From Thalia democratica (Eukaryota), in the NCBI GenBank assembly GCA_965202585.1, contig OZ241829.1, positions 65,968,001 through 66,032,000 of the forward strand: a DNA stretch of 64,000 bases, written 5' to 3'. Under the pieces are notes generated by a model. It was not told the DNA's origin. It saw only the letters and a program-made list of their open reading frames with translations, and did not search any database. Positions 1 to 64,000 of the stretch are shown one piece after another (the first letter of the stretch is position 1; each line of letters opens with the position of its first letter). Position numbers and translations under genes: made by a program.

Positions 1-272
1 TAAAACAAATTTAACCATTATAACTATCCTGAAATAGGTTAATAAAAAATACATTAAAAACATATAAATCAAATTACCACACTAGATAGTTTTGTATAAT
101 TATTAATTTTTTGGTTGTAAACAAAAAACTTTTGTTCGCTTTTTCGATTAGTTTTTCTCAATAAAGCAGCAATATTTTACTGAGTACAGCTTGGTACTTT
201 TTATCTATCTTGCTCAATATTTCATTTTAACGTTTGTTATTGCTTGTAATCAAGTACTCTCAAATCTACTTA

Positions 273-611
273 CAGGTTTGCCACTTTATCTGATAATATA
301 GAAAAACCTGGAATTTTGAAGAAAAATCACCAAAAAACCTGGAATTTTAAACAATTTTTACATGTTATGTCGAAAAATCTTGATATAACGCAAAAAAATT
401 ATCATATAGAATTTTTTTTGGTCATCATCAAAATTAAAAACACATTTAAAGTAGCTTAACCGTATGTTTTCAATGTTTTTATATATTTAACGCAGTTTTT
501 ACCTTAAATTCTACTTAAAACTAAAAATAGACCGAAACATGTGTACTTTTCAAAACTTGGAGGAAATTCTGAAAACCTGGATATTTTTTTTTTAAATGAC
601 TGATAGCTCTG
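273..611. mobile_element. MITE embedded in the macrosatellite unit (representative copy), TA-flanked, Tc1/mariner-like
   Basis: ta|CAGGTTTGCCACT ... ACTGATAGCTCTG|ta. Better-preserved ends in other units: CAGGGTTGTCACT near 34093 and ACTGATAACCCTG|ta near 36063 and 37087. The internal sequence matches the free copy at 29817. Confidence 0.7.
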
Positions 612-1475
612 TACTAACTAACTAATAGCTCATCAAGATCCGCCTTAACTGCGTTGTTAAACTAATATGGTTTTTATATCGTTAGTGATTGTTTCAAAAT
701 TTTTCTTTAAGAAAAAGCCGTTTGTTCATTGATAATGTCAATAAATTATAAAAACTTTGTGAGTAAATAGTTTGGTTTGTATTTTATTAGACAGTTTATT
801 TCTGAGCTCTAATACTTTTTTGATTGAACAAAATTATTAAACTGTCTGAAATTATAATATCTGGAATTTGTTCTGACCCCGGATTTACGGCTTACTTGAA
901 TTTCTACATCTATTTTAAGGTATTATTGGTTTAGTTAAATACATTTATGTGATGTCATAGTTCAGAATACTTCCTCAGTTTTCGATATCAGTCGCTTTCT
1001 TTTTGGGACTTGTATCTTTTTTATGGTGTCATATTAACGGTGTTGTTTTGAGAAAAACTCAAATTATTTTCATTCTATATTTCAGAAAACTCGAATATGT
1101 AAATAATCAAGAATAAGTTTTTGAATAATTCAGTAGTTAAACTGGTTTTTGCATTTTTAAACATTTGTCTGTCTTTTTTAGTCAACTGTAATTGATTAGA
1201 CATACACGACACGGCATAATTACATTTATAAACATTAGTTCTGTAATTTAAAAAAAATCAAAATGGAAGAATAAATCTGTGTCAACAAGGTATTTGAAAT
1301 TTAGCATGATTTTTTTAGTTTAGAAAACATAATAACACGTACAGAAATTTTAAAAGTAATTTAATGATTAGAAATTAATCATTTTGAACGAATTTGTAAT
1401 CTTGCCTTTGTATACTAATGGTTTAATAAATTGTGTGTACAATCTGGCTCAAGTAAAACACCTTAATACTAACAG

Positions 1476-1614
1476 CCTGAAGGAATTGAGCAGTGCTTTT
1501 TGGAATCAGTTATATTCATGAATGAAGACGATGAAGCACTTTCGGACGCATTCGAGATAATTTACCCTGAAAATGTTGTACCAGGATGCGAAAGAGTGTC
1601 ACTGTACATTTACG
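1476..1614 (+). other. 139-nt exon-like conserved core of the macrosatellite unit (representative copy)
   Basis: tactaacag|CCT GAA GGA ... TAC ATT TAC G|gtagga. Reads PEGIEQCFLESVIFMNEDDEALSDAFEIIYPENVVPGCERVSLYIY. No indels in any copy. No protein family recognised. Confidence 0.4.
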
Positions 1615-4600
1615 GTAGGATTGGTTAAATACAGAACTTTCCATTAATTTTTAGACAAATAACTTATTTAAAAAAATATTATATAGTGTGGTCTATTACA
1701 AAAGAAAATTATTTTATAATTTTAAATATATAAACCAAATTTAACCATTATAACTATCCTGAGATAAGTTAATAAAAAATACATTAAAAACATATAAATC
1801 AAATTACCACACTAGATAGTTTTGTACAATTACTTATTTTTTGGTTGTAAACTAAAAACTTTTGTTCGCTTTTTCGATTAGTTTTTCTCAATAAAGCAGC
1901 AATATTTTACTGAGTACAGCTTGGTACTTTTTATCTATCTTGCTCAATATTTCATTTTAACGTTTGTTATTGCTTGTAATCAAGTACTCTCAAATCTACT
2001 TACAGGTTTGCCACTTTATCTGATAATATAGAAATACCTGGAATTTTGAAGAAAAATCAACAAAAAACCTGGAATTTTAAACTATTTTTACATGTTATGT
2101 CGAAAAATCTTGATATAACGCAAAAAAAATTATCATATAGAATTTTTTTTGGTCATCATCAAAATTAAAAACACATTTAAAGTAGCTTAACCGTATGTTT
2201 TCAATGTTTTTATATATTTAACGCAGTTTTTACCATAAACTCAATTTTAAACTAAAAATAGACCGAAACATGTGTACTTTTCAAAACTTGGAGGAAATTC
2301 TGAATACCTGGATATTTTTTTTTTAAATGACCGATAGCTCTGTACTAACTAACTATTAGCTCATTCAGATCCACCTTAACTGCGTTGTTAAACTAAGATG
2401 GTTTTTATATCGTTAGTGATTGTTTCAAAATTTTTTCTTTAAGTTTAAATAAGAAAAAGCCGTTTGTTCATTGATAATGTCAATAAATGATGAAAACTTT
2501 GTGAGTAAATAGTTTGGTTTGTATTTTATTAGACAGTTTATTTCTGAGCTCTAAAGCTTTTTTGATTGAACAAAATTATTAAACTGTCTGAAATTATAAT
2601 ATCTGGAATTTGTTCTGACCCCGGATTTACGGCTTACTTGAATTTCTACATCTATTTTAAGGTATTATTGGTTTAGTTAAATACATTTTTGTGATGTCAT
2701 AGTTCAGAATACTTCCTCAGTTTTCGATATCAGTCGCTTTCTTTTTGGGACTTGTATCTTTTTTATGGTGTCATATTAACTGTGTTGTTTTTGAGAAAAA
2801 CTCAAATTATTTTCATTCTATATTTCAGAAAACTCGAAAATGTAAATAATCAAGAATAAGTTTTTGAATAATTCATTAGTTAAACTCGTTTTTGCATTTT
2901 TAAACATTTGTCTGTCTTTTTTAGTCAACTGTAATTGATTATACATACACGACACGGCATAATTACATTTTATAAACATTAGTTCTGTAATTAAAAAAAA
3001 ATCAAAATGGAAGAATAAATCTGTGTCAACAAGGTATTTGAAATTTAGCTTGATTTTTTTAGTTTAGAAAACATAATAACACGTACAGAAGTTTTAAAAG
3101 TAATTTAATGATTAGAAATTAATCATTTTGAACGAATTTGTATTATTGCCATTGTGTACTAATGATTTAATAAATTGTGTGTACAATCTGGCTCAAGTAA
3201 AACACCTTAATACTAACAGCCTGAAGGAATTGAGCAGTGCTTTTTGGAATCAGTTATATTCATGAATGAAGACGATGAAGCACTTTCGGACGCATTCGAG
3301 ATAATTTACCCTGAAAATGTTGTACCAGGATGCGAAAGAGCGTCGCTGTACATTTACGGTAGGATTGGTTAAATACAGAACTTTCCATTAACTTTTAGAC
3401 AAATTACTTATTTAAATAACGTTTAAAACATTAAAATAATATATTATTTAGTATAACCTATTACAAAAGATATTTGTTTTAGTTTTAAATATATAAACCA
3501 AAGCTAACCATTATAACTATTCTGAAATAAGTTAATAACGAATACATTAAAAACATATAAATTAAATTACCACACTAGATTGTTTTGTATAGTTATATAT
3601 TTTTTGGTTGTTTACGAAAAACTTTTGTTCGCTTTTTTGATTAGCTTTGCTCAATAAAACAGCAGTATTTTATTGATTACAGCTTGATACTTTTTATCTA
3701 CCTTACTCTTTATTTCTTTTTAACATTTGTTATTGCTTGTAATCAAGTACTCTCAAATCTACTTACAGAGTTGCCATTTTACCTGGAATTTTGAATAAAA
3801 ATCACTAAAAAACCTGAAATTTTAATTAATTTTTACATGTTAAGTAGAAATATTTATCATATGAATAATGTTTTGGTCATCATCAAATTTTTTTATTCAT
3901 AAACACATTTAAAGTAGTTTTATAGTATATTTTCAATGTTTTTATACTATTTAACACAGTGTTTTACCTTAAACTCAATTTAAAACTAAAGATAGACCGA
4001 AACATGTGTACTTTTCAAAACTTGGAGGAAATTCTGAAAACCTGGATATATTATTTTAAATGACTGATAGCTCTGTACTAACTAACTAACTATTAGCTCA
4101 TCAAGATCCGCCTTTAATGCGTTGTTAAACTAAGATGGTTTTTATATCGTTAGTGATTGTTTCAAAATTTATTCTTTAAGAAAAAGCCGTTTGCTCATTA
4201 ATAATGTCAATAAATGATGAAAACTTTGTGAGTAAATAGTTTGGTTTGTATTTTATTAGACAGTTTATTTCTGAGCTCTAAAGCTTTTTTGACGGAACAA
4301 AATTATTTAACTGTCTGAAAGAATAATAACAGAAATTTGTTCTGATCCCGGATTTACGGCTTACTTGAATTTCTTTATCTAATTTAAGGTATCATTGGTT
4401 TAGTTAAATACATTTTTGTGACGTCATAATTCAGAATACTTCTTCAGTTTTTGATATCTATAGTTTTCTTTTTTGGTTTTAAATCTTTTCTAAGATGTCG
4501 TTTTAATGGTGTTGATTTTCAGAAAAAAATTATCTTCTTTTTCAGGATGAATGTGAATTTTTATTCAATATCCTTATTTTTCTACGTTTAATTTTCGATA

Positions 4601-5254
4601 ATATATCCCTTTTTCTACAGTATTTGTTTTTAACGTAGTAATCTAGTTCAAGTTTTTTATTATAGAACCAACTAACACGTTTGATGTACTTTTAGTTTAT
4701 ATTAGTGATGAAAGAAACTTTTGTTACTCAAGTTTTTGTAGTTTTATATGGTTGTCTGAACTCAGTGAATACCGCTTGTTCTGTATTTATTTCCTTTCAA
4801 CAACAACAAATAATATTTCTCTATTGTATCTGGTTAGAATCTTTTACAGAACCTTGAAATTGATCTTTATTTGACTTTTGTTCTTCTTAAAATTATTTTA
4901 TATAGTTGTAAATTTATGCAAAGCTGGTTTGTGTTGACCTATCAATTTTACATTTTTGTACGTTTCTTCATTAGCAAACCAAAATGTATTTTTAATTAAG
5001 TTAATAGTTGTTATGTTTTGCGATAAAAATCCACGAATTTCAAAAATGAATTTTGTTATGTTATTTAAATAAGTTTATAATTTAGCTTTGGTTGCAGTGC
5101 AGTTTGTACTTTGCTTTATTTTAAATAAGATTTTTTTTTGACATTGAACAAACAATATTTAATTCTAGTAAGTACGTCTCTTTTTTAAACAGTGTTCTAA
5201 GTAGACTAATTGATTCATTATAATAATATTCAATATAATTCAATATGATAATAA

Positions 5255-5373
5255 GTTTTTATACTATTTAACACATTATCTTACCTTAACTTTAACTTTA
5301 AATTAAAAATAGACCCAAAAAAGTGTACTTTTAAAAACCAGGAAAAAATTTGCCAACAATATTTGGCAACCCT
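5255..5373. mobile_element. Right-end fragment of the CAGGGTTGCCA MITE family
   Basis: Homologous to the right third of the MITE (aaaaatagacccaaaaaagtgtactttt) and ends in TGGCAACCCT. Duplicate at 47013-47131. Confidence 0.6.
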
Positions 5374-8178
5374 ATTTTATGCTATAAACTAGTGTTTTAA
5401 ATATAAAACTAATATTTTTGATTAAAGGGAAAGAAAATCAAACAAATTGAAACTGTAAAGTAAGTTGAACTAAAACTAGATAACACTTAACTAATTTTAA
5501 GTTGAATTTCTCGAATATGTGATTGCTTTTGTGTTAACAATAAAAGTATATATTTCGAAACGCTACTTTTAATTTTGATGCTTTCAAATTTCTTAGTTTT
5601 TACTTATATAATTAAATAACCAACATATCAAGATAGCAAGTTAATCTCAAAATAAACGTTCTCTAAGGTAAATCTATGGTAAATTTTTACAGCTTCAGCT
5701 TAAAAGTTCAACGTTAGTAAAATAGAAATAATAATTTAATATAAAAGCAAGTACTAACTAAATTTTTGAATAAAAGCAAAACTAAATGAACACTTAATTG
5801 AATGAAAATTTTAAACCATTTGTATTTTTGCTGTCATTTTTAAATTTTGTGATGCGCTAAGTTGCAAACTAAGATTTTTAAAGAGTTTCTAACCTATAAC
5901 CGTTCATAAAATTAGTGTTTGACAAAAGTGTGCACATTGAGCAGTAAACTTTGAGAAACCAACTTTAAACTACTTTATTTTTGTTTAATTTTGTATCAAA
6001 CCGTTTCTGAAATTATAAAATTACTGAAGTATTTCTAGAGTATCGAGTTCTTAATTTGCTAAACCTAAATTCTTCGTATATTTTTTAGCTTTAAAATTGA
6101 TATCAAAAGTAAAAGAACAAAAACGTTATGTGTTATTATTAAAATTTTATTTATAAATCTTTTGTTATCCGATTTTTATTTATTTTTCATTCCAGTTTTG
6201 TACCTCAAGTCGTGCTTGTGGCCTCCTTTTCCTGACGCATCTTGTTAGTGTTATTTTACCCATAAAAACAGAACATACTATTAACAGACGAACAATTTTA
6301 TAATTTTACGAAATAGAAACTAAAACTATTTATTATATTTAAAATGTGTAATTTCACAGGTGATCATGAAGAATGACCGAGAAGACGAAAAAAGGACCCG
6401 AGAACCAGAGGCGAAGTAATTAAGAGATACTGAAAATTTGTTCCTACGTCATAGTGTTTCTTACTTTAATAGGTGAATATTGTTTGTTTTCATTTATAAA
6501 TTATAGTTATAGTTGTTAAAATTAGTTGTATTTTAATATTTAAGCATACATTTCAATGTAATTCAGTATAATACAAGTCAAAAGGTAAAATACATTTTAA
6601 AGTAAAGTTTTTTACCATTATTACGTCATTGAATTATTTGGAATGAAGCAGGACCTGACCACAAGGATAGCCTAAACCAGAGGTCGCAGTGAAATTAAAA
6701 AAAAAAAACGTTGTCGCGGTCCACACTTAATTAAATAATTTTAAAAACAAAAATGGGATAAAATATACTATGATAAAGCACTCGTAAATAGTTTTATTAT
6801 GAACATTCAAGTTCTTTTATTTAAAGTAGTGCTTAATGTTATCCGCCATTGAAACTGTCGCTCTACAAACGAAATTTGATTAAATGTTTAGTTATACATA
6901 AAAGTTAAGTGAGCTATCAATTAATTAGCTTCACATGGCGTCAGGTACAAATATGTTGATACTCCTTAAACTTAATTCCTTAATACTCAATAAAAATTAA
7001 AAACCGCAGTCATATTATTCCTGGGCAAAATTATGAGTTAACAGTAGCTTTAAAAGGTCCTAACAGTTCAAAAGAAAAACTTATGGAGTATTTGTTACAT
7101 GTCGTTTTGTTGTAGTAGAAAAATGTAAAAGTTTAAATTACTGTAAACATACATATACACAACTGAATATTTATTTATGTTATTTCGAACATAACCTTTA
7201 GAGTTGTACAACTCAGTACTGTTGACTAAAAAATTTATTTAAGCTTTTTATTTTATAGGTGTTTCGTACTTTTATAAACTAAAAATACATACTCAGCTTG
7301 AATACATTTAATTATATCATTAGTTGTTTAAAAACACAGTAGTAATAAAATTAAAGTTTGCTTTACATTGTTAAGCTTATTAACTGTACCACAAATTTCA
7401 AGTAATTTATTTTTTGATACGCAAAGTTTATGGTAATTTTTAGCTTTGATGATGTTGTTAAAAATATTTTTTTGTTGAGAGTTACTTTTATTATTTACTT
7501 TAAACTTAGAGATTAAAACAAATACAATAATCAAACTTACTATCGAATTTGTAACAACTCAATGAGTAAAAAATGTATTATGTTTATAAAGTTTTCAAAA
7601 TAGTATAGTTATTAATAAAACTTTAAGTACTTTAAAATAAAATATTAAAGTCAAAAACAAAAATAGTGTTGAAGTAAACTTATAAACTGCAGTAATTGTT
7701 ATAAACGAAATTACAAAATGTTAAAAGTTAAATGTTATTAAACTTATATTAATACTTGATCTTTGAAAAATAATAGTTTATCTTAACTTAGATTTAAAAG
7801 TTGTGCAATATTTATATTCTATACAACATTAATTAAACAATTTAAAATTTGAGTTTTTATTCTACACAGTGTTTAATGCGTAATGCAATGATCACGAACT
7901 AAAAACTGTTTAAAGTAAGACTGACAAAGCTATATATACTAAATTATATAAGTCTGTTAAATTGACAAAAATTTCAAAGTCTTAATAACGAATTGAATAA
8001 CTACTACAGAGCTATCATTCAAGTTATTATGAGTGTTAAATTAATTTTTTATACAAAAAACTTATTGGATACAGCTTACAATGAAATGAAAATACAAAAT
8101 ACCAATACGATATAAACACAAGCATAAATGCAACAAACTTAGAAAATGGTAAAATATGCAATTACGGACACGAAAATG

Positions 8179-9660
8179 TTATGATTTTAGATATTTAGCG
8201 AAGTATCTACATTTACCAATTAACTCAGTTCTGGAGTTGAGAGGAGTTTTTGTCAGCGATCGCTATATCCAATTTTTCAATATTATACAGAGTGCATATT
8301 TTGCTCGGTTTGCGTTGATTAATTTTATGCATTATCTTCCATTTAACATTGTTCTTAATCATATGTTCATTGAACTTAGCGGCGTGAAAAAATGAGCTGA
8401 ATTTTGTGGATTCTTTCAGATTTTAATTTCTGCAGCTATGTATATTTTCGTTGTATCTTGTTTTAAAGTTTTTTGCAGTTTCCAAAATAATGCGGTTCTT
8501 TGTTATCATATGAGACAGTAGCTTTGTATATGAAACGTCTGGAAAGGCATTTACCTTCCACTGGGCATGAGATTCTAATTCTACAATTGAAACTTGTTTC
8601 ATTTTTCTTTTTGTTTTTACTTTCCTCTATGATTTTAGACTTGATTTGCTGATTTCGAATTCTATGTTGGGCATACATGAATAACCTATTTTGATTGCCT
8701 CTCTGTTGAGAATTTTATATATATATTTGTTTTTAGGGAAATGCTTATCTACTGATTTAATTTTTTTTTTCCCTATTTTGGTCTTTAATGTTGCTCTAAA
8801 AGGAAGGTTGTAGTATAACACTTGTTTTTTTTTTTTCTATCGCCCCTACCATCATTATGATTTGAGTATTCTAAAACTTTATTAAAACCACTGTTTTTTA
8901 ACGCTTTCTCGTATGATTTCTTGTAATTATCAGACATAGTCTTGTTTTTTGATAAATCAAATAGTATATTTTGTTTCATATTAGTTGGCTCTCTTTTGAC
9001 GCTTGGTTAGATTTTATATTTATGTTTTTTTTCTTTAGCGTTTGGTTTTCTGTGGGGATGATATATCATTCTGTAGATCAAGTAATACATCCAGGAAGTC
9101 TATGTTACTGCTGTCTAATTCAATCTTATTTTTTAAGTTTTGTTCAGAGAAAACCGCTCTAATTTCTTTTCTTGTCTTTTCTATGACTCTTTTTGATCGC
9201 TTTTTAATTTTAGAAATTCCATCATCGCGCTACTACTCGAAGTTATCTTTAGATAAAAATTAGTTTAGGTTATTCAATAGGAACAAAACGATTAACTTGC
9301 AAACTTCAGCGCCATGGTAGCTTCCCATCGGAACGTCAAATAGGTCTTCTTTTGCATTCTTTTTGATCCAAACTTCGTTGACATGCCTGAGAACTGTCTT
9401 GCACGAGTGTAGTATAGTATATATGTCTGAGTATGTTATTTTCATTTATTTTTTTGCAAGTTCGATCGATTTTTTTAGTAACAGATTATTCGAGATACTT
9501 GGGTAGGATTCTTCTATATTAAATTTTATAAACGTGTAACTACTCTTGTTGTTGATTTTATTAAACCATTTTATAACATTATCAATTTTTATCAATTGCT
9601 GTAACTTAGTTTTTTTCTTTAACTTTAATCTAAATTCTTAACAATAATTTAATATTATAA
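8179..9660 (-). mobile_element. Decayed Penelope-like retroelement (RT + C-terminal GIY-YIG endonuclease), 5'-truncated
   Basis: Minus-strand fragments, in order: FIKFNIEESYPSIS (FDIxxFYPSI-like); LFDVPMGSYHGAEVCKLI; **RDDG (9221-9229, decayed YRDD); YSCMPN; FNCRIRISCPVEGKCL..FIYKATV..YFG; LNSRTELIGKCRY with stop at 8179. Many stops and frameshifts. Confidence 0.9.
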
Positions 9661-10432
9661 ACAATCAAATATTAAGTTAAACGCTTGTGCAGCAGCAAAC
9701 AATTAATGTATATGTTATAATACACAACATAAAGGTAATTTTAAAGTAAATAAGATAACTGGTCACTCTTCTTAACATTCTTAAAACTATTGAAAAAATC
9801 AAAGACCTTATGTAAACACAAAAATTTTTTCTTCAATTAAAATATATTGCATTTGGTTTAAATTGTATATTTGTACAAAGTGTTTATCTCCTTCTTTTTA
9901 TTCAAAATTTCATTGCTTGCCTAAGCTTACCGATTTTCTGTATAAGATTCTATTTTTGTTTTGTAGTAACAACTGCCAGAAGTTTTTAAGCAATGGACAT
10001 TAATTAAAACTGAGGATGTTTCTTAAAATCATGTCCTTCATACTAACTTTAAACCTCATAACAGTTTATACTGAAAAAAACTCTATTTATTAAAAATAAG
10101 TAAAGTATTTCAACTAAAACATTAAAAGACTTTAAATTAAAACAGTAATGATAAAACAGAAGCGTTTAAATTTGTGTTATTTTTATCACACATGTTTTAA
10201 TGAATTCACCTTGTTTATATCATAGTTTTAATTATAACTGTATAAAACTATTCGTTTAACTTACAAAAATAACTATTATATACAATAACTTTTACTAACA
10301 ACTTAAAAAGGACTTGGTAATTTGAAACCCTAGGTGATTTAAAATTTTTACAATTATTTTTGTGCAAAAAAAAAACGATGCTCACCTTTTATAACTTAAG
10401 ACGAACTTTCTATAAAAAATAAATAGTCATTC

Positions 10433-11404
10433 TTATGGAAAAAATTAGAAAATTTTGACTCTCTTGAGGTAGCTTACTTAGTAATTTTTGATAAAAAAAA
10501 AGACCTTTCGTCTTTCGACGAAAAGCCTTTAGAAAAAAAAAAGGGAGAAAAAGAAAAAAAAAATGGCGCAAAAAAGCCCCCGACGAGCCGCGGCCGCGGC
10601 TCGTCGGGGGCTTTTTTGCGCCATTTTTTTTTTCTTTTTCTCCCTTTTTCTCTACCAACCGTTCCTTTAACCTCACATTTTTTTCTCAATCCCCAATTTT
10701 TGAAAAAGCAATCCTCCCCCGCTTACTTATAATTGTTTTTTCGAAGCTCCTGCTTCACTTTCAAAATATTTCGCTTCTACTCACCTCTAACTTTTATAGC
10801 GACCATGAGAATAAGCCGCTTTTTCACATGTACTATTTTGAGTGCTTCGCCTTCGCATTTTCTAATATTTCGCCTACTCCGCTTCAGTCGCCCCGGCCGT
10901 AGCTTCACCTCTAGAAATGCTTTAGTTAGTATCACTCAAACGTACTTTTAACTGGGCTGAATCATGTCAGAGCTCGTTCATATACTGCTACGCCTTCTGA
11001 GAGAGCGGCTTCTTTGCTCAACGGCTTGCTTAGGACGGCACGTGCCTTGCTCTCGCTTTACCTTCCCTTGGTGCTTATTCAATCGGCTCTGTTTAATCGC
11101 CTAGCTGCGGTCTTTCGACTCCAGCTCGAGTCGACGGCCACGTCGACTCAAGCTATATGCCTGCAAAAACACTAACACACAACCCGCCTTCACCACGCCT
11201 ACCCGCTTAGACGTCTAGGGATTTATTCATTACAGCTTTACATTGTAAAATCCCTAAGCTGACTAGGTCGTCAGCTCGCTTTCTGGCACACTACAAGTGC
11301 CTCTCTTAATAGTGTAACATTAAGCATACGCGTATGATGCCGAAATGTACGTGTTGAAAAATTTGGCTACCCCAAGAGAGTCAAAATTTTTCTTTCTTTC
11401 ATAA
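10433..11404. mobile_element. ~970-bp inverted-repeat-bounded, hairpin-rich insert (putative non-autonomous element)
   Basis: 10449-10473 aaaattttgactctcttgaggtagc is the reverse complement (24/25) of 11366-11390, extending imperfectly to TTATG...CATAA. The interior is more GC-rich than the flanks, with many stems. No transposase ORF and no clear TSD. Confidence 0.55.
10538..10649. repeat. Perfect 112-bp palindrome with no loop, centred on GCGG|CCGC
   Basis: Checked base by base: all 56 pairs are complementary about the 10593/10594 axis; the first mismatch is 10537/10650. Confidence 0.98.
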
Positions 11405-12148
11405 CATTACATTTTTACAATATTACTTAACTTATATGTGATGCACTTTATATTATCATGTTAACCAACTACACTATACACATCTATAAGGACACTAAGA
11501 GGTACGCATTTGCGTAAAGTACGCACTTACATTAATAATGAGTTAATTTATTAAGTATAAATGTGAAAGTTTTTGCCTTTTTCAAACTTAAATAATGTGT
11601 AACTATATATTATCTTTACTTTATAGCCAAGTACAGTTTTTTTTTCAGTTAAACAGCTATGACGTTTTAGTTGTAACAAATATGGTTCATTTGCATTGCT
11701 AGCTGTTTTAAATATTACAAAGTTACATAAATAAGAAGTTTTTTTTTTAATTAAAACTGAACAAAGATTTTTTATCACATATACATGTTCCTCCTTATAA
11801 CAAACTTAATAACTACATGTGCTTTTATATAACTAACAAGTTTCTAATATAAAATTTTGTTTTATTAATATTTTATTATCTATTAATTAAAAATTAATAT
11901 TTTATTATCTATATGATTTGATTCTTTTAATTTATTTTAATAACATTTTTGAATGTGTGATTATTTTTGAAATTATTATTGTCACTCAGAAAATTTTAAA
12001 AAATAAATGCTAAAGCTTGTTAGCATTTTCATATTAATTAACTTAAATTTCATAACTTAAAACTTATAAATTTTCTTATTAATAATTAATTACAAAACTT
12101 GTAAACTGACTATTTCAATTAAGAAAACATAACCAAACCAGTTTATAA

Positions 12149-24500: not shown

Positions 24501-24981
24501 CCAAAATAAGTGATAGTTTTATAAAACTTATAAGTTTTTTAGTTTATTGAAAACGATACAGAAATTGACATTCGGTAATATAGTCAAGGGAACTGATTTA
24601 TGCTTAAATCTTTAAAAATATCAAAGAATTAAATTAATTAATAAACTCTAAAATTTTTTATACTGTAGATAAATGATTAGAAGAAAATCTACACAAGTGA
24701 CTTGTTGCATTTGCATAAATAATCTGAGTAACTTTTTAACTTTTTTATAACTGTGTTTCTAAAAGTTGGCATAATAGCTTTTAAAAAGTTATTTTACTGT
24801 ATTAGTGCTGATTAAATGTTTTTGTTAAACGTGTTTTAAAAAGAATTTCTTTATTTTTTTTTTGGGTAGATCTCAGCACTTATAACAAAAGAAAAAGTAT
24901 TCAAACTAACAATGTCATAAATATCACTTCATTTCAATTTTAACACAAAACTGTTAAATATTTTTAACAAAATTTATTTTT

Positions 24982-32053: not shown

Positions 32054-32055
32054 GT

Positions 32056-33205: not shown

Positions 33206-33299
33206 GTAGTTACCCTTATTTCAATTAACTAATTTTAAAAATTTAAAGGAATATTTAAGATTTGTTAGAATAAATTAAAAGAATTTAATTAGTTGCTTT

Positions 33300-49200: not shown

Positions 49201-49936
49201 GCTTTGATGATGTTGTTAAAAATATTTTTTTGTTGAGAGTTACTTTTATTATTTACTTTAAACTTAGAGATTAAAACAAATACAATAATCAAACTTACTA
49301 TCGAATTTGTAACAACTCAATGAGTAAAAAATGTATTATGTTTATAAAGTTTTCAAAATAGTATAGTTATTAATAAAACTTTAAGTACTTTAAAATAAAA
49401 TATTAAAGTCAAAAACAAAAATAGTGTTGAAGTAAACTTATAAACTGCAGTAATTGTTATAAACGAAATTACAAAATGTTAAAAGTTAAATGTTATTAAA
49501 CTTATATTAATACTTGATCTTTGAAAAATAATAGTTTATCTTAACTTAGATTTAAAAGTTGTGCAATATTTATATTCTATACAACATTAATTAAACAATT
49601 TAAAATTTGAGTTTTTATTCTACACAGTGTTTAATGCGTAATGCAATGATCACGAACTAAAAACTGTTTAAAGTAAGACTGACAAAGCTATATATACTAA
49701 ATTATATAAGTCTGTTAAATTGACAAAAATTTCAAAGTCTTAATAACGAATTGAATAACTACTACAGAGCTATCATTCAAGTTATTATGAGTGTTAAATT
49801 AATTTTTTATACAAAAAACTTATTGGATACAGCTTACAATGAAATGAAAATACAAAATACCAATACGATATAAACACAAGCATAAATGCAACAAACTTAG
49901 AAAATGGTAAAATATGCAATTACGGACACGAAAATG

Positions 49937-51418: not shown

Positions 51419-52190
51419 ACAATCAAATATTAAGTTAAACGCTTGTGCAGCAGCAAACAATTAATGTATATGTTATAATACACAACATAAAGGTAATTTT
51501 AAAGTAAATAAGATAACTGGTCACTCTTCTTAACATTCTTAAAACTATTGAAAAAATCAAAGACCTTATGTAAACACAAAAATTTTTTCTTCAATTAAAA
51601 TATATTGCATTTGGTTTAAATTGTATATTTGTACAAAGTGTTTATCTCCTTCTTTTTATTCAAAATTTCATTGCTTGCCTAAGCTTACCGATTTTCTGTA
51701 TAAGATTCTATTTTTGTTTTGTAGTAACAACTGCCAGAAGTTTTTAAGCAATGGACATTAATTAAAACTGAGGATGTTTCTTAAAATCATGTCCTTCATA
51801 CTAACTTTAAACCTCATAACAGTTTATACTGAAAAAAACTCTATTTATTAAAAATAAGTAAAGTATTTCAACTAAAACATTAAAAGACTTTAAATTAAAA
51901 CAGTAATGATAAAACAGAAGCGTTTAAATTTGTGTTATTTTTATCACACATGTTTTAATGAATTCACCTTGTTTATATCATAGTTTTAATTATAACTGTA
52001 TAAAACTATTCGTTTAACTTACAAAAATAACTATTATATACAATAACTTTTACTAACAACTTAAAAAGGACTTGGTAATTTGAAACCCTAGGTGATTTAA
52101 AATTTTTACAATTATTTTTGTGCAAAAAAAAAACGATGCTCACCTTTTATAACTTAAGACGAACTTTCTATAAAAAATAAATAGTCATTC

Positions 52191-53162
52191 TTATGGAAAA
52201 AATTAGAAAATTTTGACTCTCTTGAGGTAGCTTACTTAGTAATTTTTGATAAAAAAAAAGACCTTTCGTCTTTCGACGAAAAGCCTTTAGAAAAAAAAAA
52301 GGGAGAAAAAGAAAAAAAAAATGGCGCAAAAAAGCCCCCGACGAGCCGCGGCCGCGGCTCGTCGGGGGCTTTTTTGCGCCATTTTTTTTTTCTTTTTCTC
52401 CCTTTTTCTCTACCAACCGTTCCTTTAACCTCACATTTTTTTCTCAATCCCCAATTTTTGAAAAAGCAATCCTCCCCCGCTTACTTATAATTGTTTTTTC
52501 GAAGCTCCTGCTTCACTTTCAAAATATTTCGCTTCTACTCACCTCTAACTTTTATAGCGACCATGAGAATAAGCCGCTTTTTCACATGTACTATTTTGAG
52601 TGCTTCGCCTTCGCATTTTCTAATATTTCGCCTACTCCGCTTCAGTCGCCCCGGCCGTAGCTTCACCTCTAGAAATGCTTTAGTTAGTATCACTCAAACG
52701 TACTTTTAACTGGGCTGAATCATGTCAGAGCTCGTTCATATACTGCTACGCCTTCTGAGAGAGCGGCTTCTTTGCTCAACGGCTTGCTTAGGACGGCACG
52801 TGCCTTGCTCTCGCTTTACCTTCCCTTGGTGCTTATTCAATCGGCTCTGTTTAATCGCCTAGCTGCGGTCTTTCGACTCCAGCTCGAGTCGACGGCCACG
52901 TCGACTCAAGCTATATGCCTGCAAAAACACTAACACACAACCCGCCTTCACCACGCCTACCCGCTTAGACGTCTAGGGATTTATTCATTACAGCTTTACA
53001 TTGTAAAATCCCTAAGCTGACTAGGTCGTCAGCTCGCTTTCTGGCACACTACAAGTGCCTCTCTTAATAGTGTAACATTAAGCATACGCGTATGATGCCG
53101 AAATGTACGTGTTGAAAAATTTGGCTACCCCAAGAGAGTCAAAATTTTTCTTTCTTTCATAA
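52191..53162. mobile_element. Inverted-repeat-bounded insert (duplicate copy)
   Basis: Same as 10433-11404 at +41,758. Confidence 0.55.
52296..52407. repeat. Perfect 112-bp palindrome (duplicate copy)
   Basis: Same as 10538-10649 at +41,758. Confidence 0.98.
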
Positions 53163-53906
53163 CATTACATTTTTACAATATTACTTAACTTATATGTGAT
53201 GCACTTTATATTATCATGTTAACCAACTACACTATACACATCTATAAGGACACTAAGAGGTACGCATTTGCGTAAAGTACGCACTTACATTAATAATGAG
53301 TTAATTTATTAAGTATAAATGTGAAAGTTTTTGCCTTTTTCAAACTTAAATAATGTGTAACTATATATTATCTTTACTTTATAGCCAAGTACAGTTTTTT
53401 TTTCAGTTAAACAGCTATGACGTTTTAGTTGTAACAAATATGGTTCATTTGCATTGCTAGCTGTTTTAAATATTACAAAGTTACATAAATAAGAAGTTTT
53501 TTTTTTAATTAAAACTGAACAAAGATTTTTTATCACATATACATGTTCCTCCTTATAACAAACTTAATAACTACATGTGCTTTTATATAACTAACAAGTT
53601 TCTAATATAAAATTTTGTTTTATTAATATTTTATTATCTATTAATTAAAAATTAATATTTTATTATCTATATGATTTGATTCTTTTAATTTATTTTAATA
53701 ACATTTTTGAATGTGTGATTATTTTTGAAATTATTATTGTCACTCAGAAAATTTTAAAAAATAAATGCTAAAGCTTGTTAGCATTTTCATATTAATTAAC
53801 TTAAATTTCATAACTTAAAACTTATAAATTTTCTTATTAATAATTAATTACAAAACTTGTAAACTGACTATTTCAATTAAGAAAACATAACCAAACCAGT
53901 TTATAA

Positions 53907-56900
53907 ATGATGTATTTTTTTATTAAAAATAAAATTTTGACATGTTATTACTTACTTGTGCTTTGTGTCATGTTATTCTTATCATGTTCAACAGGGAAAA
54001 TTTCCATATTCAATTTGCGTCCTCACTGCGGGGAAGCGGGTCCGGCTCACCGCCTTGTGACCGGTTTCGTGCTGGACGAAAACATCAGTACTTCTGTTAA
54101 GAAAAGTTTGCCCTGTTTGTATGTATATTGTATAAATTATCAGTGAACTTTCATAAATATTGCTGAATTATACAAATAAAAACAGTTGTGTATTGTTGAC
54201 ATTTTTTTAATTTTCTTTAATGTTAAATATTTTAAAACGATTACTCATCTAAAACATGTGGATTCATAATCTTTTCATTGGATAAAACTTAATGAAAGTA
54301 GTTGCTTCCTTTTGTTAATAAATAATTTAATTTTTGTATTTTACCCTAAAAAGAATTCAGAGAGAGCTCTTTTTTATTTTTTTTTTATATGAATTTCATT
54401 CAGTTATTAAGATTATGTATATTAACCTAATTAAAAACTACATTTATTTTAACAAAACACTAATGCGCATCTATTTTTAAACTTTGTTTTAATTTTTGTT
54501 TTTTTAAATTTTTCTATACTTGTTTTTTAGCTAAACGAGGTTGTATAAACAAAGTAAAACAAAAAAATTGTGTAATTTCTTATGTAACCAACAAAGTTGT
54601 ACAAACCGACAAGTAACTAACAACCTTTTTACGTTTCAGTCTGCCAAGGTGTACCGTCGTTCGACGGAGCAACGACCCACATCGTCCACCAGCGGCAGCC
54701 CCAACTGTCCAGTTTCGTCTACGGCGACGTGCTGACGTTTTCCTGCGACGGCCACAAACGTTTTCTTCCTTCCAACCCGTCGCTGACTTGCCAGGAAAAC
54801 GGAAGGTGGGGACCCGACACGCTGATTGGCTGCGTTGAAGGTAAGAAAAAATCCCCAAAAGTATGAGTACAATCTAATTTGACTTTTTTTTTACAGATGA
54901 CGTGTGCCCGTCTCCACCGCAAATCGCCTTTTCCTCGCACCACGACTACTACAGGCCTCCGACTCCGGCAAACTCTACCGACTCGATGTGGCTTCCGGAA
55001 ACGATCCTGCATTACGAATGCAGCGATCAGTACCCGATAACCGTTCCCGACGACTTCTTCGGGGCGAAATGCACCAGCAGCGGCGCGTGGGTGGGCGCGT
55101 ATGGAAAATACCATCCTTCGCATGAAAAACCTCACGATATTAAAATGAACGACAAGAAGTTCAAGGAAAAGTTTGGAAAATGCGTCACTGGTATTTTTAA
55201 TTTTTAATGTTTAGTCAACCTTTTTGTGTTTATAATTCACTTGAAGTAAGCTAGTAGCAGTTTATAGTTTTTTAGTTAGAAATTACGTTCGAAAAGGTAC
55301 ATGATGTCAATTTCAAGTTATTTTGATTTAAAAACTAAACTGCTACCACCAGTATCTTTGAAATATGTTGTTCCTAGGTTAACAATTACCACTTCTAATT
55401 AAGTTTTTAGCAAGCCTTTATGTTTCCAATTTTAGTTTGTTAAAACTTTTTTTTTACAATTGTCTATATTGACCCATGTACGACTCTGTTCTCGGCATGC
55501 TTTTTAGAAATTGCGTGGGATTTTTAAAAGGTTTATAAAATAAATTTATTTTAAAAATGCAAAATTTATTTCAGAGTGTGAGTTTCCCGATCCACATAAC
55601 TCAATAAAAACTGTGCTAAAATATCTTGAAGTCAATGCGTCATACTCCATACCTTCAGTCGTCAGGTACACCTGTAACGAGGGTTACCATTGGACGCGGG
55701 TGGCAGTTGTGAGCTGTCGCCACCAAGATATTCAAGATAAAGGTCCTTTCGGAAGATTAAACACGCTGCTTGGATTCTGTGCACCCGGTTAGCTTCTTTT
55801 AGTTTCAAAGATAAATTTTTGTAAACAAATTACAAAACAACTGAATGTTTTAAATTAACAACCGTAAGTATTTATCTTTTCTGTTTTTTAATATGTCGAA
55901 TAATTTAGTTTTGTTAAAGCCTTTCAGCGCAAAGTATTGCTACTGAAGTTTGTACATAAGTTTAAGGTAAAATAAAAAATTACTAATAACTTTTAGCTTG
56001 CCCGCCACTCCCATTTTTAATACGAAACGGGGTTAAGCGAGTTATTAGGCAACCGAATCGAAGGAGCTTGGTTTCCTTCTCGACAACCATACACTACTTT
56101 TGCAACCAAGGATTCACTCCGACTTTTGTAAACAGCCGATACAGTTGCAACTACGCTGGGAGCTGGCAAAATTCAGAGCTGAACCCTAGGTGTTTGAGGC
56201 GTAAGTTGTAACAATATTGATAAGTGTTTGTTTATCAGTCCACCTACTATTTGACTTTAAGGCTGCCCTAACCTGCAAAACGATCCGTACGGAAGTCTTG
56301 AAGCATCTGTACAAGCTCGGACTAATTTCTATCTGGCCGGTGACCGAGTTGAACTAAGCTGTGATGATGACTACGTGTTGAGCTCAGACTTAACAGCTTC
56401 AAGTACAACTTTGTCCTGCCTGTCAAACGGAAGGTGGAATTACGAAAAAATACCGGTTTGTATTAAAAGTGAGTTACGCTAATCAAAAACTTTTATTCTT
56501 ATTCTGTTGAACTTTCATTTATGTAAGAAAAAAATTTAAGACGTTCTTTTATTTTGACACCTACACTTGTTTCAGAAGTTTTTAAGCACTAAAATTAGTG
56601 ACCTAACAAGTTTAGTTGATTCGTTTTTTCATTAGTTTAAATGCATTTAAACTAATTTATTAACTTAATTTTATCTACAATATACTTCTTTTCTACTCAA
56701 TTTGTTTATTTTAAGGATGTGACGACCCTCCTCGAGGCGACTTTCTAAATTCCACGATAAAGTTCAGTCACGCGCAAGGAGAATACTGGTCGTACACCGT
56801 AGTGGAGTACGTATGCAAGGAAAAACACACTTTTAAATATCCCGATGAGGACGGGACTCGCACTTGTGAAGGAGACGCAAACTGGAGCGATGACTCCCCT

Positions 56901-59900
56901 CCTGAGTGTGCTCCCGGTTAATAAATGATGAAAATATTATCACTATCCCAACAAATACTTTTAGTTATATTTTAATCTGTGTGTAAGAAATAACAAATAA
57001 ACTACACTTAACAGAATGTGAAACTCCTCCAGCCGTTGAAGGCTCAACAATTAATATTTTAAACGACTCATTTATTGAATACGAATGTTTAGACGGTTAT
57101 CACATTGACAACGAGTCGAACAGCGTTTTCGAGTGCAGGCTCGGTCCTGTTTGGTTTCCCTTGGAAACTCCTGTCTGTCTAAAAGGTAAATAAATACCAG
57201 TTTTTACTGCAAACTGTTTGTTAGACAAATTTCAAGCGTCTAAAAAGATCCTCTCAGGCTCAAATCAATTTCCTACTCTAAAATTTTTTAACGGACTATT
57301 TTTAAGTGTCTTGAAATGTTATCAAATTTATTACGAGTTTATCTTTTCTAGAATGCAACAGCATACCCGTGTACGATAAAACGTTGCCCGCTGTTGTTAC
57401 AAAGAATGTTTCAAGGGAGGGCAAGCTTATAACCGGATCATCGTTGAATTTCAGCTGTCAACCAAACTACGGCCTGATCAACTCGATATCGAGTTGTGGC
57501 CTCGACGGCAGATGGACGCCCGAGATCACGTGTGTTCGAGGTATGTATATTTGCACGTGAAAAAATAAATTAAAAACAACTCATTTTTTTGTTTTTAAAG
57601 ATTGCGGGAATCCAGACGAGATCGACAACGGATCTTTCCTGGTCAACGAAGAGTCGGATGAGTATCCTGAAGGTGAAGAGGAACTGTACAGCAGCAAGTA
57701 TCCGCACCAGGTGACTTATTCTTGCAACCCGTTTCACTCGACGGTTCCCGGAAGCGAGATGGTGTTGAAATGCTCGAATACCAGCTTCACGTTTGAACCT
57801 GAGTTGCCGGTCTGCTTGCCAGGTGACCAAGTCGTATACAAATGTTTAAGCTCATGATTTGTACTAAATTTTATTAAAAGTTTTAATCGGTTTTTTAAAG
57901 TTTTAATGTTTCAATTTATTTTAAAACCACAGAGTGTTCAACCCCGCCAACCAACAATTATTCCACGTTTGATTTTTTCATGAGCACTCACCGTGTCTAC
58001 CTACCGCCGAACAGAATAAAGTACACTTGCGAAGCCGGCTACAGAACTTTGCCTTCAGGTCTCAGCGTGCTGCAGTGCGGTGATGACGGGGAATGGACAT
58101 TTGATGATTTCAAAAGCTGCTACACTGGTTAGATTGTTGACTAGGTTTATTTTGATGGCTTAAAAGTTGAAGTAAAACGGTCAGTTAAAAATATTGCTTA
58201 AGTAGTTATAGTATATTTTTATTCTACTAAAAGGTGATTACAAAACTTAATATTATACTGCTTTAGTAATAATAAAAACATTTTTAAACAACGTTTTTGT
58301 AATTGGAACTATAAAAGATTACTTTAATTACATTGCGTTTTAAAAAAGTATATTTCTAAAAGCTTTAATACGTCATTCACAATACTTTGAGCAGAGTGTA
58401 AACTTTTTTCATAAGTTTTTATATTTAAATAATACTAAACAAATTTAAAACAGTTAAGCAAAAATTACGGAAAAAATATACAAATACTAATTAAAGTACA
58501 TTAGTATAACTTTTTCCACAACTTTAATAGAAACAGAATGCAATTCTGCGCCCCCACAATTAGACAATGCAACTCAGCATTTCAAATGGCAGTATGAAGG
58601 GGTGCATCTTCCAGGCACGCAAGTCAATTATGTTTGCCAGAACGGCTTCATCATGGCCCCGCAGTTTTTCCAGGGATTTGAATGCAGCGAAAATTCGTTA
58701 GAATACGACATTCCTCTCACAACCAGAGAGTCGTTTACTTCTGGTGCTTGCTATCCGGGTTAGGTTTCAGAATATATATATATTAATTAAAACTTCTTTT
58801 TTGCTTTTTTATTTTGTTTTTAAGTTTTTTCCCATTTTGAATTAACAAAATTAACTGGAAATCTTCAGACTGTGGCGACTGGCCAGACATCCCGAATGGC
58901 AAACGGTTCACTGCGGATTCACAGTTTCTATCGGACTTGGTAGGAGAAAGACACGTTTTGATAATTTCATCCAACTATTTGTGCAACACAGGATATCTTT
59001 ACACGAGCGCAAATAGCCTTGTAACATGCACTGATTCCTCAAAACCACTAGATGTTAAAAGTTGCTCTAGAGGTAATATTTTGTTTATAACTATTTACGA
59101 ACAAAAACATAAAGGTAACTAAAATTAAAAAAATAATATTTAAAAATCTAAACAAAGTTGAAAAGTGTATGTATTCCAGAATGTAAAAGTTTGCCAATTA
59201 CAAGTATGGACTTTGCAACCGTCGAATATTACAAAAGGCCAAGGACAGATATTAATGTGGGAGGAACAGAATTCAGATTTGTTTGCGACCAAGGGTACTT
59301 CCTCGTGGACCGTCCTGGCTCGTTGCGTGTGAGCTGTGAAAAGCTACGCGACGGTTTTCAAGAAGATCTAGGAATATGCGGAGTCATTGGTTTCAGGTGT
59401 GATCTTAATGGTATCTGGCACTCTTTGGAAAGATCGCGCTGCATTACAAGTAAATTTAACGTACCACTTTGAATTAAACACTAGTATTTTTTGCATCAAA
59501 CTAATTGGCATGTTTAGTAGTTGAGTGAAACGTGTTTAATGAATTTAATTTAGGTTGTCTGACACCACCAAGCGACGATTTGGCAACTTGGAAAATTACC
59601 AGCACATATTGGGAAGGAAGACTGTTCACCGACACGGTTGTAGAGTACACTTGTCCTGAAACCCACACGCTGACCAACTTCACTGATTCAACTCGTATAT
59701 GTGGAAGAGACGGAAGTTGGAGCGATCCTGTTGCACCCAGCTGTATCCCTAGTAATATTCGTTATTATTTTTAGTGAACTCTAGTTTCCAGAGCTTATAG
59801 TTTTACCTCATTAAATACTTTTAAAGTAACGTGTTACAATACACATAAAACTATTTTTCTTAGCTGTTAAATCTCACGTACGATGAAAATAAAAGTTTAT

Positions 59901-62900
59901 GAACACTTTGGACACGCTACCAAAGTAAATTCTAAGGAGTGATAAAGCTAACGTGTACTAAGTAATGATAATTATTGAGTATTTAATTTTCAGTTTTAAA
60001 CCTTTATACTATCAATACTTCTTATGACAATCACTTCTGCATTAAAACATACATATGGGAAATCAACTACTTTTTTTTGTAAAACTTACTAATTTACGCA
60101 GCTTAATGAGTTTAAGGACGTCTGCTTAAGTTTTGTGTTCAATTTAGCTAACTTTAAGTCTTTTGCATAAAAATTTGGCTTTTAGATGGAAGACAATATA
60201 TCAAAAAAACTTAATTACTGTTTACAAAAAGTTTGCCTTCTTTGGCAACAAATATAACTGTACCAAATATTGATTAGTTATAAAAGTTTTGAAAATTTCA
60301 ACAAATTTCAGTTTGCGAACTGTTGCCAACTTCCATCGAGAACGGTCAATTCCACCAGTTGACCGATCAGCATGCCAGCATGAAAGATGTAGAAGGAACA
60401 AGGAAGAGTTACGTTTGCGACGAAGGCTACCACCTGCTCATATCCTCTTACTTTCCAGCTTCTTTTACATTCCACTGCAACCAACAAGTACCTCCGAATG
60501 CTGTGCAGTGGAATGAAGTCAGTTCTGGGAGCCAAGTGGCAAAACCGTTGTGCATTAAAAGTTGGTGTTTTTTTATTAAACGTTGTATATGAAAAGCAAT
60601 ATACGCCTTATTGATAAAAAATTTTCAGGAAAATGTAAAGCGTATCAAATAATAACGGATGCTCATTCGTACGATGAGGCAGTTGAAAGGTGCGACAATT
60701 TATCTGCAGACCTTCTTGGACCAACCCTTGACGATGTAGATTATGAAAAGTTTGTTTTAAAACACTTTGCTAACCCTACTACTTTTCTAGTTACGTTTTA
60801 TAAAAAGAAAAAATTGCATTCAAAACGGTGATTGTTTATTTTCTATAACATTAAAAATGTAAACTTATACAACAGGTATTTGAAGGCTATAACTCAGCAC
60901 ATGAGTGATGAAAACTTCGAGTACACTTACATCTACGGAAAGCCAGAATTGATCGACACCTTTTTAAACTGGTGTTCAGGCTTCCCAAAACCTTCCGCCT
61001 CTTCGATCTGCTATTTCATCCGCACAAACGGCTTCTGCGTTGTTAATTTAGACTGTGAAAGCAAACGGCCGATTGTATTCGAAGTTGACCGCTTCGAGCT
61101 TAGGCCAAGAGAAGAGTCAAACTCATACCAGTTTGCCGACGATGCTTGCAGATCGGTAGAAGGTACCCTGATGTCTACGACTTTTTTCATCCCTGCTTAT
61201 ATGCCGTAAGTACTTTAGAGAAGTTATCTTTGTTTTTCTTGTTATTTGCATTGACAAATTTCGGTACTTGAATAGTGGAAAACGGTAAGTTAAAACATTT
61301 TCAAACTGAAATGTTTATTTTTATTAAAGTTCACCTGAGTTGACAAGTCGAGCAAAAATAATAATAAGCCGTATTTTGAAAATAGTTATATGAACATCTT
61401 TAAAATTTTACCACATTCATAGAGAACAATAATAAAAAACAAGGGTTTATGTTGTCACAAAAACATTTTCTCAGGTCAAAATAGTTTTGCTAAACTTTTA
61501 AAAACCATACAAATAACTAATTTCTAGAGGTAACATTAAGCACTTAAAATCTACATGTATTATACTATACCCAAATTACAGTCGAATAAAGAAGATCATA
61601 GACACATTACCAGGAAGCAAGATGTGGACTGGTTTGCAGCGGCCCGGGTCCGATTATTCCGCAAACGACTTCGTCACCCTGCCCGACGGTAAAAGAATTC
61701 TGATATCTCAAATATCGCAGTTCTGCCGGCGCGTGGACTACAACCGAGATCGCGGCTGTTTGAGCGACTTCGGGTGCTACCAATCCTACCAGGCTTCAAT
61801 CTGCGAAATTGCCGTCTGCTCAGCTCGAGACGCCAAAGTGCCAAATCTTCCTTACACGAGATGCAGCAGAGGAAGCTGGTACGTTTCAGCTGACAGATCA
61901 GAACGACTTGTCTGTTACGCAGGTACAACAACTGTTTCAAATATCGTTTTAGTATTTTTTACTATCAATTTTGATTCTTCAGATGTTCAGCATTTGTTAT
62001 CAGACTTGTATACTACAGTAGAATTATTTTAAGACTAAAAAACATGTTACTATGTAAATTTTTCTATATCGTTTTTCAACTTAATGTTTTTTAATTTCCG
62101 AAATTACTTAAATGACAACTTATAATTTTTTATAATTTAGTACAATTTAGTAAATATATACACGTTTTCGTAAGTTAATTAGGATAAAAGTAAAGTTAAA
62201 AGTTGCTTAAAGCTCTCATGAGTTCATTCGTGAGTTTAAAACTTATAAAATATATTCAAATAGATAAGTATTGCTACCTAAGCTAAAATAAAAGTCAAAC
62301 TGAATTAAGACTCAAGTAACAAATTATATGAGTTTTGTCTACAATTATTTGTAATTGGATTATAAATGCAAGAAAAATAAGTACCGTTTTGAACTAAAAT
62401 TATAATAACAGTAAAATAAGTGTATTTGCCACAAGCTCATATCAAGTGCTTTATATAAGCAGTTAAAAGCTTATGATAAAAATTACGCACAAATTCTGCT
62501 TGGCTTTTTTGAATAAAGACTTTAAGCATGTAGCATTCTGTTTGTACATTTGTAGACAAACTACTTATCTAAAAAGAGATGAACTGATCCTTCTCTATAT
62601 ACAATTCATCAACGACATTACTTTATAAAACAGGATTTGACATCAAACTGACAACGGAAAAAGGAAGTTGGGAAGAAACAAGAGACATGTGCGAAGATAT
62701 GGGAGGTCAACTGGTCCACAACACTTTGAAGAGATACGTTGGAAGACTTCGTACATCGTATAAGGAGTAAGTAGCTAAAGAATTTACTCAAGTTAAGTTG
62801 TGTATTGCTACTGAGCAAGTGTAATGAACAAGTTTTTAAAATTTGGTATTATCCATTCAAGCTCATTAGATTGATTATTTTTATAAATCTTTTGATAAAA

Positions 62901-63323
62901 CGTGTTTTGGACGTGGAATAAAACATGACACTTTAAATTTTTTTTTACCATTTCAAAATCTCATTGAGCATAAGTTTTTTCTACATTAATAAAATCTTAA
63001 ATTAAATATTGAAAAATAAAAATTTTGAAATTTTTCACTTATTCAGTTTGGTGGAAGAAGCGATTGACAGCAACGATGTTTGGATCGGATGCCAGCGGGC
63101 CAAGGACAAAACTTTGAACAGCGAGTTCCAACTGTTGAACGGCGAATATTTGTTCGCTTCCCGCGCAAACCCGTTTGAACAGCTGCTCTACTATTGGTCG
63201 GCTTCAGTGCCACGTGACACCGAACTCGATCAAGCCGTTGTCATAAGGCACGAGAAAAAAGCGCTCGAAAACTTGCCCAAGTCACAAGAACTTTACGGGC
63301 TTTGTGAAATTGGACATTATTGA
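53907..63323 (+). CDS. Second complete copy of the 15-CCP plus 3-CTL gene
   Basis: All exons at +41,758 (53907-54087, 54640-54840, ... 63047-63323). ORF-track translations are identical to copy 1. Confidence 0.9.
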
Positions 63324-64000
63324 TTTATTCTGTTTTTATTTTTTCTATAAGTTAGTTTTTTCTATAAAATTCAAACTTGTATCAAATGATTTCTTCTAAA
63401 ATTGTATAAGATTTAAATTTTAAATTTAGATTTTATAACGATATTTATCGTTTATATTTTGTCTAGTAGTATGTTTGATATATTAAGATATGGATAATTC
63501 AACAAATTAGAAATATTCTGTTTTATTATATTTCAATTTTATTAAGCTTTGCATTTTGTTAAACTCCCAAAAACTAAATTTTATTTGTCAAACTTTCAAG
63601 TATTGGATTATAACAATTTTATAATTGTGTACTTTGAAAAGTTTCACTTGAAACAAAAGTTGTTTTTTTACTTCGTTGTTTACTTATTATATTTTAGTTT
63701 TAAAGGTTTGATTTATAATACTAAAGTTTTGGAGTGTATAAAGCAAAATTATATTTTTTAAATAATCATAAGTATTTCAAGTTTCTAATATAAACTATAA
63801 GCAAATATAAGACTTAAAATAGTTTTCTTAAGGACGCTACAGTTTAAAATAAAAAAGACTATTTTTTATAATCAAATTTACCCAAGGTAAGTATTAAATT
63901 TTAATATATGTTTCTTAACATTTTTAAGCTACTTAAAAATGTAGCAGTAAGTAAAGTTTTTGTCTTAGAAAAACAAAAAAGACCTTGTGAGTAATTTTTG

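Follow-up and report, generated by a model that had tools for sequence, protein, structure and literature searches.

How should a stretch of chromosome be read that begins and ends with the same 22 kb? The stretch in question, hereafter the window, comprises 64,000 nucleotides from the pelagic tunicate Thalia democratica (assembly GCA_965202585.1, contig OZ241829.1, referred to below as C5, forward-strand positions 65,968,001 to 66,032,000), and carries two copies of a multi-exon gene made of sushi (CCP) exons followed by lectin-like modules. A preliminary description, made from the letters of the window, had reported a 22-kb repeat at constant offset and without net indel, and direct comparison agrees fully: at an offset of 41,758 bp, 22,242 of 22,242 positions are the same, with no mismatch, no N and no insertion or deletion, and chance is ruled out as the source of this identity. 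The “long A/T homopolymers” stressed in the same description are indeed present in the repeat but are modest (11 runs of at least 10 bases, the longest of 12, plus one short AT microsatellite), and because they are modest, their stability dates the event only weakly. Overall, we consider that the window probably shows 1.5 units of the young, four-unit core of a 12-unit chromosomal tandem array, made by unequal crossing-over.

The evidence for the array lies mostly beyond the window, where the preliminary description had advised looking for further periods. Two 5-kb markers of the repeat unit each have 12 copies on C5, in the interval 65.66–66.13 Mb, always on the + strand and head-to-tail, over ~470 kb; a tandem array may be recognised from three such units upwards in one orientation on one chromosome. 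The same markers were found on four unplaced contigs (C47, with 3 units, C173, C423 and C1616), or 6 units altogether, and three short unique probes gave exactly 18 copies each across the assembly. Numbering the units on C5 from U1 to U12, the window runs from U9 into U10, and the distances from one start to the next are about 37, 49, 30, 40, 40, 36, 41.77, 41.758, 41.758, 60.5 and 33 kb. This map of units rests on 16 loci of 8 kb each and on tables of matches; for long queries over the macrosatellite and the transposon-rich parts, repeats dominated the results, which held only 1–4 scored matches.

Broadly speaking, the outer units are 95–99% identical to the window, mosaic in their identity, and spaced at 30–60 kb. 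In U3, U5 and U11, for instance, the gene part is ~100% identical, vs. only 96% for the part that holds a neighbouring reductase gene, and the gene marker lacks its initial ~650 bases in U1, U5, U12 and the first unit of C47. A segment of 428 bases (6606–7033) is present as a tandem pair in U2, U4, U6, U7, C47 and C173, and as a single copy in the core units, U11 and U3. U10 and U11 are separated by a truncated unit (C5:66065118-66072657) in which the equivalent of ~9830 is joined directly to that of ~25364, with loss of the entire sushi gene and of some of the reductase gene. Among the unplaced contigs, the pairs C47 and C423, and C47 and C173, are separated by just 2–3 substitutions per 8 kb, and represent either more units of near-identical sequence or a single unit assembled redundantly. 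Since identity is graded and mosaic between units, including a switch in U7 and a patch in U8 described below, the array points to repeated exchange rather than one single event.

Four adjacent units, U7 to U10, form the core. Their reductase markers start at C5:65906784, 65948542, 65990300 and 66032058, which gives a spacing of 41,758 bp three times, and the near-perfect block that they form extends over ~142.6 kb, or 3.4 periods. On the left, U7 is 91–99% identical upstream of the equivalent of 13134, where its last difference lies, and 100% identical from 13135 to at least 28800. The repeat was previously taken to start inside the macrosatellite, a substrate for crossing-over; that start is the edge of the window, and identity in fact continues leftward past it, as far as this breakpoint in U7. 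On the right, U9 equals U10 over 1–30462, and identity ends where a ~4.5-kb insertion starts in U10: the match stops at C5:66040220, and the insertion is flanked by a duplication of ~10 bp. The third unit of C47 has 4,486 additional bases at the same place, again with an overlap of 10 bases, whereas U7, U8 and U9 lack the insertion, which makes it a useful marker of unit ancestry. The window itself matches C5:65968001-66032000 perfectly in every test, and can be told from the locus one period leftward (C5:65926243-65990242), which has G for T at 21971, A for T at 24654, and 1 and 7 mismatches in two further segments.

The core units are also set apart by derived changes, as expected for young copies of a single progenitor. 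An in-frame deletion of 33 bp (11 codons) in the second lectin-like module is private to U7–U10: a 100-base query across the deletion junction matched at 100% in exactly 4 places, namely these units, and the remaining 14 have 33 more bases at this point. In the same 4 of 18 units, the reductase gene has been inactivated by two lesions, a nonsense change at 25458 (Gly codon to TGA) and a 1-bp deletion at 25498. A search of the genome returned 12 full-length reductase copies without stops, in as many older units, and the copies of U7–U10 are all split, with the TGA.

Within this core, U8 has equal length, and over the 27 kb compared it shows 9 substitutions and no indel. One of these falls in 4601–10500, six are clustered within 18850–19350, and the last two are at 21971 and 24654, so that 17001–22300 holds seven of them. 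The clustered patch scores 877 bits, the same as for U4, U12 and the first unit of C47, where the other core units score 904, and the U8 letters at 21971 and 24654 likewise occur in other units. At 21971, the G of seven units outside the core was either read directly or deduced from a score that permits a single mismatch in a 100-base query, and the remaining seven units, five of which lack a direct reading, differ at 2–4 query bases. Because its patch scores and alleles match those of distant units, U8 is a separate, patched copy rather than a consensus error or a loop in the assembly graph, and the patch is a gene-conversion tract in an otherwise identical copy. Moreover, since U8 keeps its 9 substitutions, two of them with alleles read as common to other units, the assembler did separate copies in this region.

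These observations suggest the following history. The array on C5 comprises 12 gene-bearing units and one gene-less remnant, with 6 more units unplaced. One unit would first have gained the 11-codon deletion and the two reductase-killing lesions, which are placed before the amplification because they are common to the four core units and confined to them. This already-mutated unit would then have been amplified to four adjacent copies (the 3' part of U7, then U8, U9 and U10) through unequal exchange, between sister chromatids or homologues, of misaligned neighbouring units, so that each middle copy would have its 5' part from the right-hand parent and its 3' part from the left-hand one. An exchange that creates such hybrid units would account for the exact 41,758-bp period, for the diverged 5' end that U7 retains as its own, and for the restriction of the ~4.5-kb insertion and of an expanded macrosatellite to U10 within the core. 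Gene conversion from distant units patched U8 afterwards. The zero differences between U9 and U10 over 30 kb argue for a very recent event. Coordinates of all features are collected in Table 1.

Table 1. Features of the window and of the array units to which it belongs (positions are those of the window, or their equivalents in other units)
Feature	Position	Strand	Remarks
Exact repeat, copy 1	1..22242	none	5' 22.2 kb of U9, starting at the window edge
Exact repeat, copy 2	41759..64000	none	head of unit U10
One full array period, 41,758 bp	1..41758		same spacing for U7/U8, U8/U9 and U9/U10
Left edge of identical block, in U7	equivalent of 13134..13135
Empty insertion target site in the window's units	30453..30462		~4.5-kb insertion here in U10 and C47 unit 3
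Patch in U8, 6 substitutions vs. U7/U9/U10	18850..19350 (501 bases)	+	covers first lectin-like module
Diagnostic site	21971		T only in U7, U9 and U10; G in U8 and seven other units
Diagnostic site	24654		A in U8, T in the other three core units; A common to C47 unit 2 and C173
Multi-exon gene, 15 sushi/CCP-type exons, then three lectin-like modules	12863..21565	+	second copy 54621-63323
RNA-supported 3' exons	..18802, 18871-18991, 19118-19447, 19824-20164, 20876-21008, 21289-21565 (stop)	+	spliced X13 contig
Site of 33-bp in-frame deletion	19973..19975	+	second lectin-like module
Intronless short-chain dehydrogenase gene, carbonyl-reductase-like, inactivated in core	24985..25796	-	Pfam adh_short
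Open reading frame with AMP deaminase exon relic	12149..12385	+	second copy 53907-54143
Macrosatellite, ~7 units, period ~1.75-1.77 kb, neighbours 92-93% alike	33300..46298		self-BLAST offsets 1767, 3517, 5267 and so on

Private features anchor three of the four core units, namely the 5' end of U7, the patch of U8 and the insertion of U10. Several points weigh against a core of exactly four units with perfect identity, and the first concerns the fourth. U9, from which the window's first copy is taken, is alone in having no private marker; it is recognisable solely by a combination of states (the upstream core allele and the empty insertion site) that lie 20–26 kb apart, and its existence and number therefore rest on the assembler. 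Copy number in general, like U9, rests on the assembly; the comparisons covered ~27 of 41.8 kb in U8 and ~15.7 kb in U7; and the perfect identity could in part have been made by consensus or polishing over near-identical copies. Some of the independent sequencing data also fall on this side. The 19 runs consulted consist of Logan contigs, in which word depth does not equal copy number and minority paths are dropped. The contigs of runs X1, X3 and X13 carry the long form at the site of the 33-bp deletion; those of X1 and X3 also lack the core alleles at 18873–19321, which describes the majority path only. The window's letters at 18873–19321 and 22262 are absent from X1, though several assembled units carry them.

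The alternative that survives best accepts the amplification as real and holds that U9 is an assembler product, generated by one extra pass round a 41.8-kb loop in the graph, or else that more such units exist and were collapsed. Beyond the lack of a private marker, this gains from U9 being the same as U10 over 30,462 bases and as U7 over the compared part, from the ~89 kb without known difference that separate the last U8 marker from the U10 insertion, and from the difficulty of assembling the region, as seen in four unplaced contigs that are made up entirely of array units, some of them almost alike. Yet the usual error of assemblers with identical tandem units is to collapse them, additions being rare, and the two states that define U9 lie close enough together to be spanned by long accurate reads. 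The unit is also present in independent data sets: in X1, 6 kb of sequence recruited 283 contig pieces at 95–100% identity, whose word depths add up to about 1,000. A further, weaker measure is that both letters occur at 21971 in X1, with a depth of ~108 for T vs. 649 for G; the T share (~108 of 756, or ~14%), although not a copy count, is compatible with the 3 of 18 units that carry this allele. On balance, we hold a miscount of U9 to be unlikely, albeit a possibility to be taken seriously.

The proposal that the copies are real but less perfectly alike than they look, a few true differences having been erased by polishing or consensus, seems to us more doubtful. It draws on the complete absence of differences over 30 kb, homopolymer runs included. 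However, the same assembly keeps 9 substitutions in U8 and 2–10 per 8 kb between other near-identical units, and small differences therefore do not seem to have been erased generally.

Two other explanations fare far worse. False duplication, in which both parental alleles of one unit are placed in series, is common in long-read assemblies of heterozygous animals, and the locus resembles such cases in its adjacent identical copies, its repeat-rich and difficult setting, and its extra unplaced contigs with units of the array. It differs from them in having four copies rather than two, three of them anchored, and in the gap-free window, which contains no N. Above all, the candidate allelic contigs (C47 and C423) are 0.1–0.9% off the core (per 8 kb, the third unit of C47 and C423 show 7–10 substitutions in one segment, ~75 in another), and carry neither the 33-bp deletion nor the reductase lesions; since they differ in this way, the alleles of the assembled individual are not identical, and a haplotype artefact is very improbable. 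A concatemer of a 41.8-kb circle (extrachromosomal circular DNA or a rolling-circle product), whether free or wrongly built into the scaffold, can draw only on the exact period and the identity of the copies, and has next to no chance against the diverged, same-orientation units of the same family on both flanks and the 14 further diverged units, block edges at different unit positions (13135 and 30462) in place of one junction, and a U8 that differs by 9 substitutions and carries a conversion patch.

The three options of the preliminary description thereby separate. Its very recent tandem copy-number variant, doubling the gene, comes closest, except that the locus is a four-unit core in a 12-unit array (18 units in the assembly) and not a doubling; its circular concatemer of ~41.8 kb has to be given up, with diverged flanks in the same scaffold, unequal edges and the U8 differences; and of its assembly or haplotype artefact, the haplotype form is unlikely for the reasons given above, which leaves the miscounting of the unmarked U9.

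Tandem arrays that evolve by unequal crossing-over and conversion are well known from human amylase, the opsin clusters, RNU2 and other macrosatellite gene arrays. The present locus resembles these textbook segmental-duplication arrays in that its units lie head-to-tail, measure tens of kb and diverge from one another by anything from nothing to several per cent, and equally in its mosaic identity, hybrid edge units, dead or truncated copies, and exons more homogeneous than spacers. Nothing essential differs; what is unusual here is the state of the four youngest copies, every one of which has a dead passenger gene and lacks 11 codons of the main gene. The locus is, in other words, a new example of a typical tandem segmental-duplication array with a young core and ongoing conversion, and involves no new mechanism. 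It is instructive nonetheless, as a worked example of how a 64-kb view can take a many-unit array for a two-copy duplication, and of how shared derived lesions put events in order (mutations, then four-fold amplification, then a conversion patch). It also flags a region where assembled copy number is not to be trusted without long reads, adds a large and recently active tandem array, and puts on record a sushi/lectin-like family that has expanded, and is expressed, in a pelagic tunicate.

The gene carried by each unit begins with 15 sushi-type exons, seen as open reading frames (ORFs) between 12863 and 18831. Ten of these ORFs match the Pfam Sushi profile (PF00084) at or above its 20.7-bit cut-off, which places the protein in the sushi/CCP family, and 3 more match it less strongly; the 5' end of the gene and a signal peptide were not found. 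The 3' part is supported by RNA: a 2,255-base spliced contig from run X13, a 2016 marine metatranscriptome, covers 18690–22333 with the last six exons and a 3' untranslated region that reaches ~22333. Its alleles are those of the second unit of C47 and not of the core type. Spliced and obtained from the wild, this transcript demonstrates expression of the gene family. Words sampled from the gene region were present at 23–37% in several marine metagenomes, and the animal is thus common in seawater samples.

The 399 codons of this 3' part form a frame that stays open across the splices, with GT..AG borders, and suggest three C-type-lectin-like modules and a short cysteine linker, a likeness that is as yet unproven. 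For two separate exons, language-model features gave Lectin_C in 95/100 and 96/100 matches, with scores of 0.91–0.92. Single lectin-like exons had no match in Pfam (Lectin_C, PF00059, included), each domain being split over two exons, and searches of PDB sequences with the three lectin-like exons taken singly returned only noise. Across units, divergence is 0.1–0.35% in the ORF parts of the sushi gene vs. 0.3–1.0% in the remaining sequence, a difference that would fit purifying selection, homogenisation, or both.

Proteins that combine CCP and C-type-lectin-like domains include the selectins and others, and polymorphic CCP genes such as vCRL1 are known from ascidians. The present gene resembles CCP-lectin proteins in its Pfam sushi repeats, its suggested lectin-like modules, and its secreted-type, cysteine-rich modules that each sit on their own exon. 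Unlike selectin-type proteins, it opens with many CCP repeats and closes with three lectin-like modules, with no EGF domain or membrane anchor seen. It is tempting to speculate, although we regard this as rather improbable, that the core may be a haplotype-specific and still expanding amplification of a recognition-gene variant without the 11 codons, in which conversion between units, as in the U8 patch, shuffles lectin exons. If so, the locus would serve in recognition (immune or self/non-self), diversifying and polymorphic in copy number, in a pelagic tunicate that is clonal and forms chains.

The reductase gene is convergent with the sushi/lectin-like gene and remains intact, at 271 aa, in C47, C423 and C173. 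The Pfam adh_short profile (PF00106) covers the whole 271-aa protein of the C47 copy (E-value 9e-35), as in short-chain dehydrogenases of the carbonyl reductase type, and does not do so for the broken copies of the window; presumably the protein is also like human CBR1. Compared with carbonyl reductase-type genes, it is intronless, has been amplified as a passenger, and is inactivated in four core units. Distant intronless relatives, at 39–58% identity, are found on C4, C5, C8 and C10.

Among the other parts of the unit, the macrosatellite spans the (arbitrary) unit boundary, so that its tail recurs at 1–4540. Tandem Repeats Finder (TRF), which considers periods up to 500, reported nothing in the unit except one 29-bp mini-repeat. 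The unit also holds unclassified ORF debris, and four ORF pieces at 8.4–9.6 kb had no match in Pfam. Just 3' of the gene, ~700 bases (22313–22990) are 66–71% like short tandem arrays with a step of ~188 bases on C6–C10, and were not reported as tandem by TRF on the window.

Finally, the ORF at 12149–12385 had been considered as a signal-peptide exon for the sushi/lectin-like gene and was rejected: it matches an AMP deaminase family (PF19326, 30 bits vs. a cut-off of 27), and is broken or altered in U7, U2, C47 and C423. Relatives of this relic with 80–83% identity were found in what appear to be other tandem arrays, at intervals of roughly 26–31 kb and on both strands at 92.68–93.59 Mb on C2, and also at 0.72–0.78 Mb on C5 and 19.6–19.7 Mb on C6.

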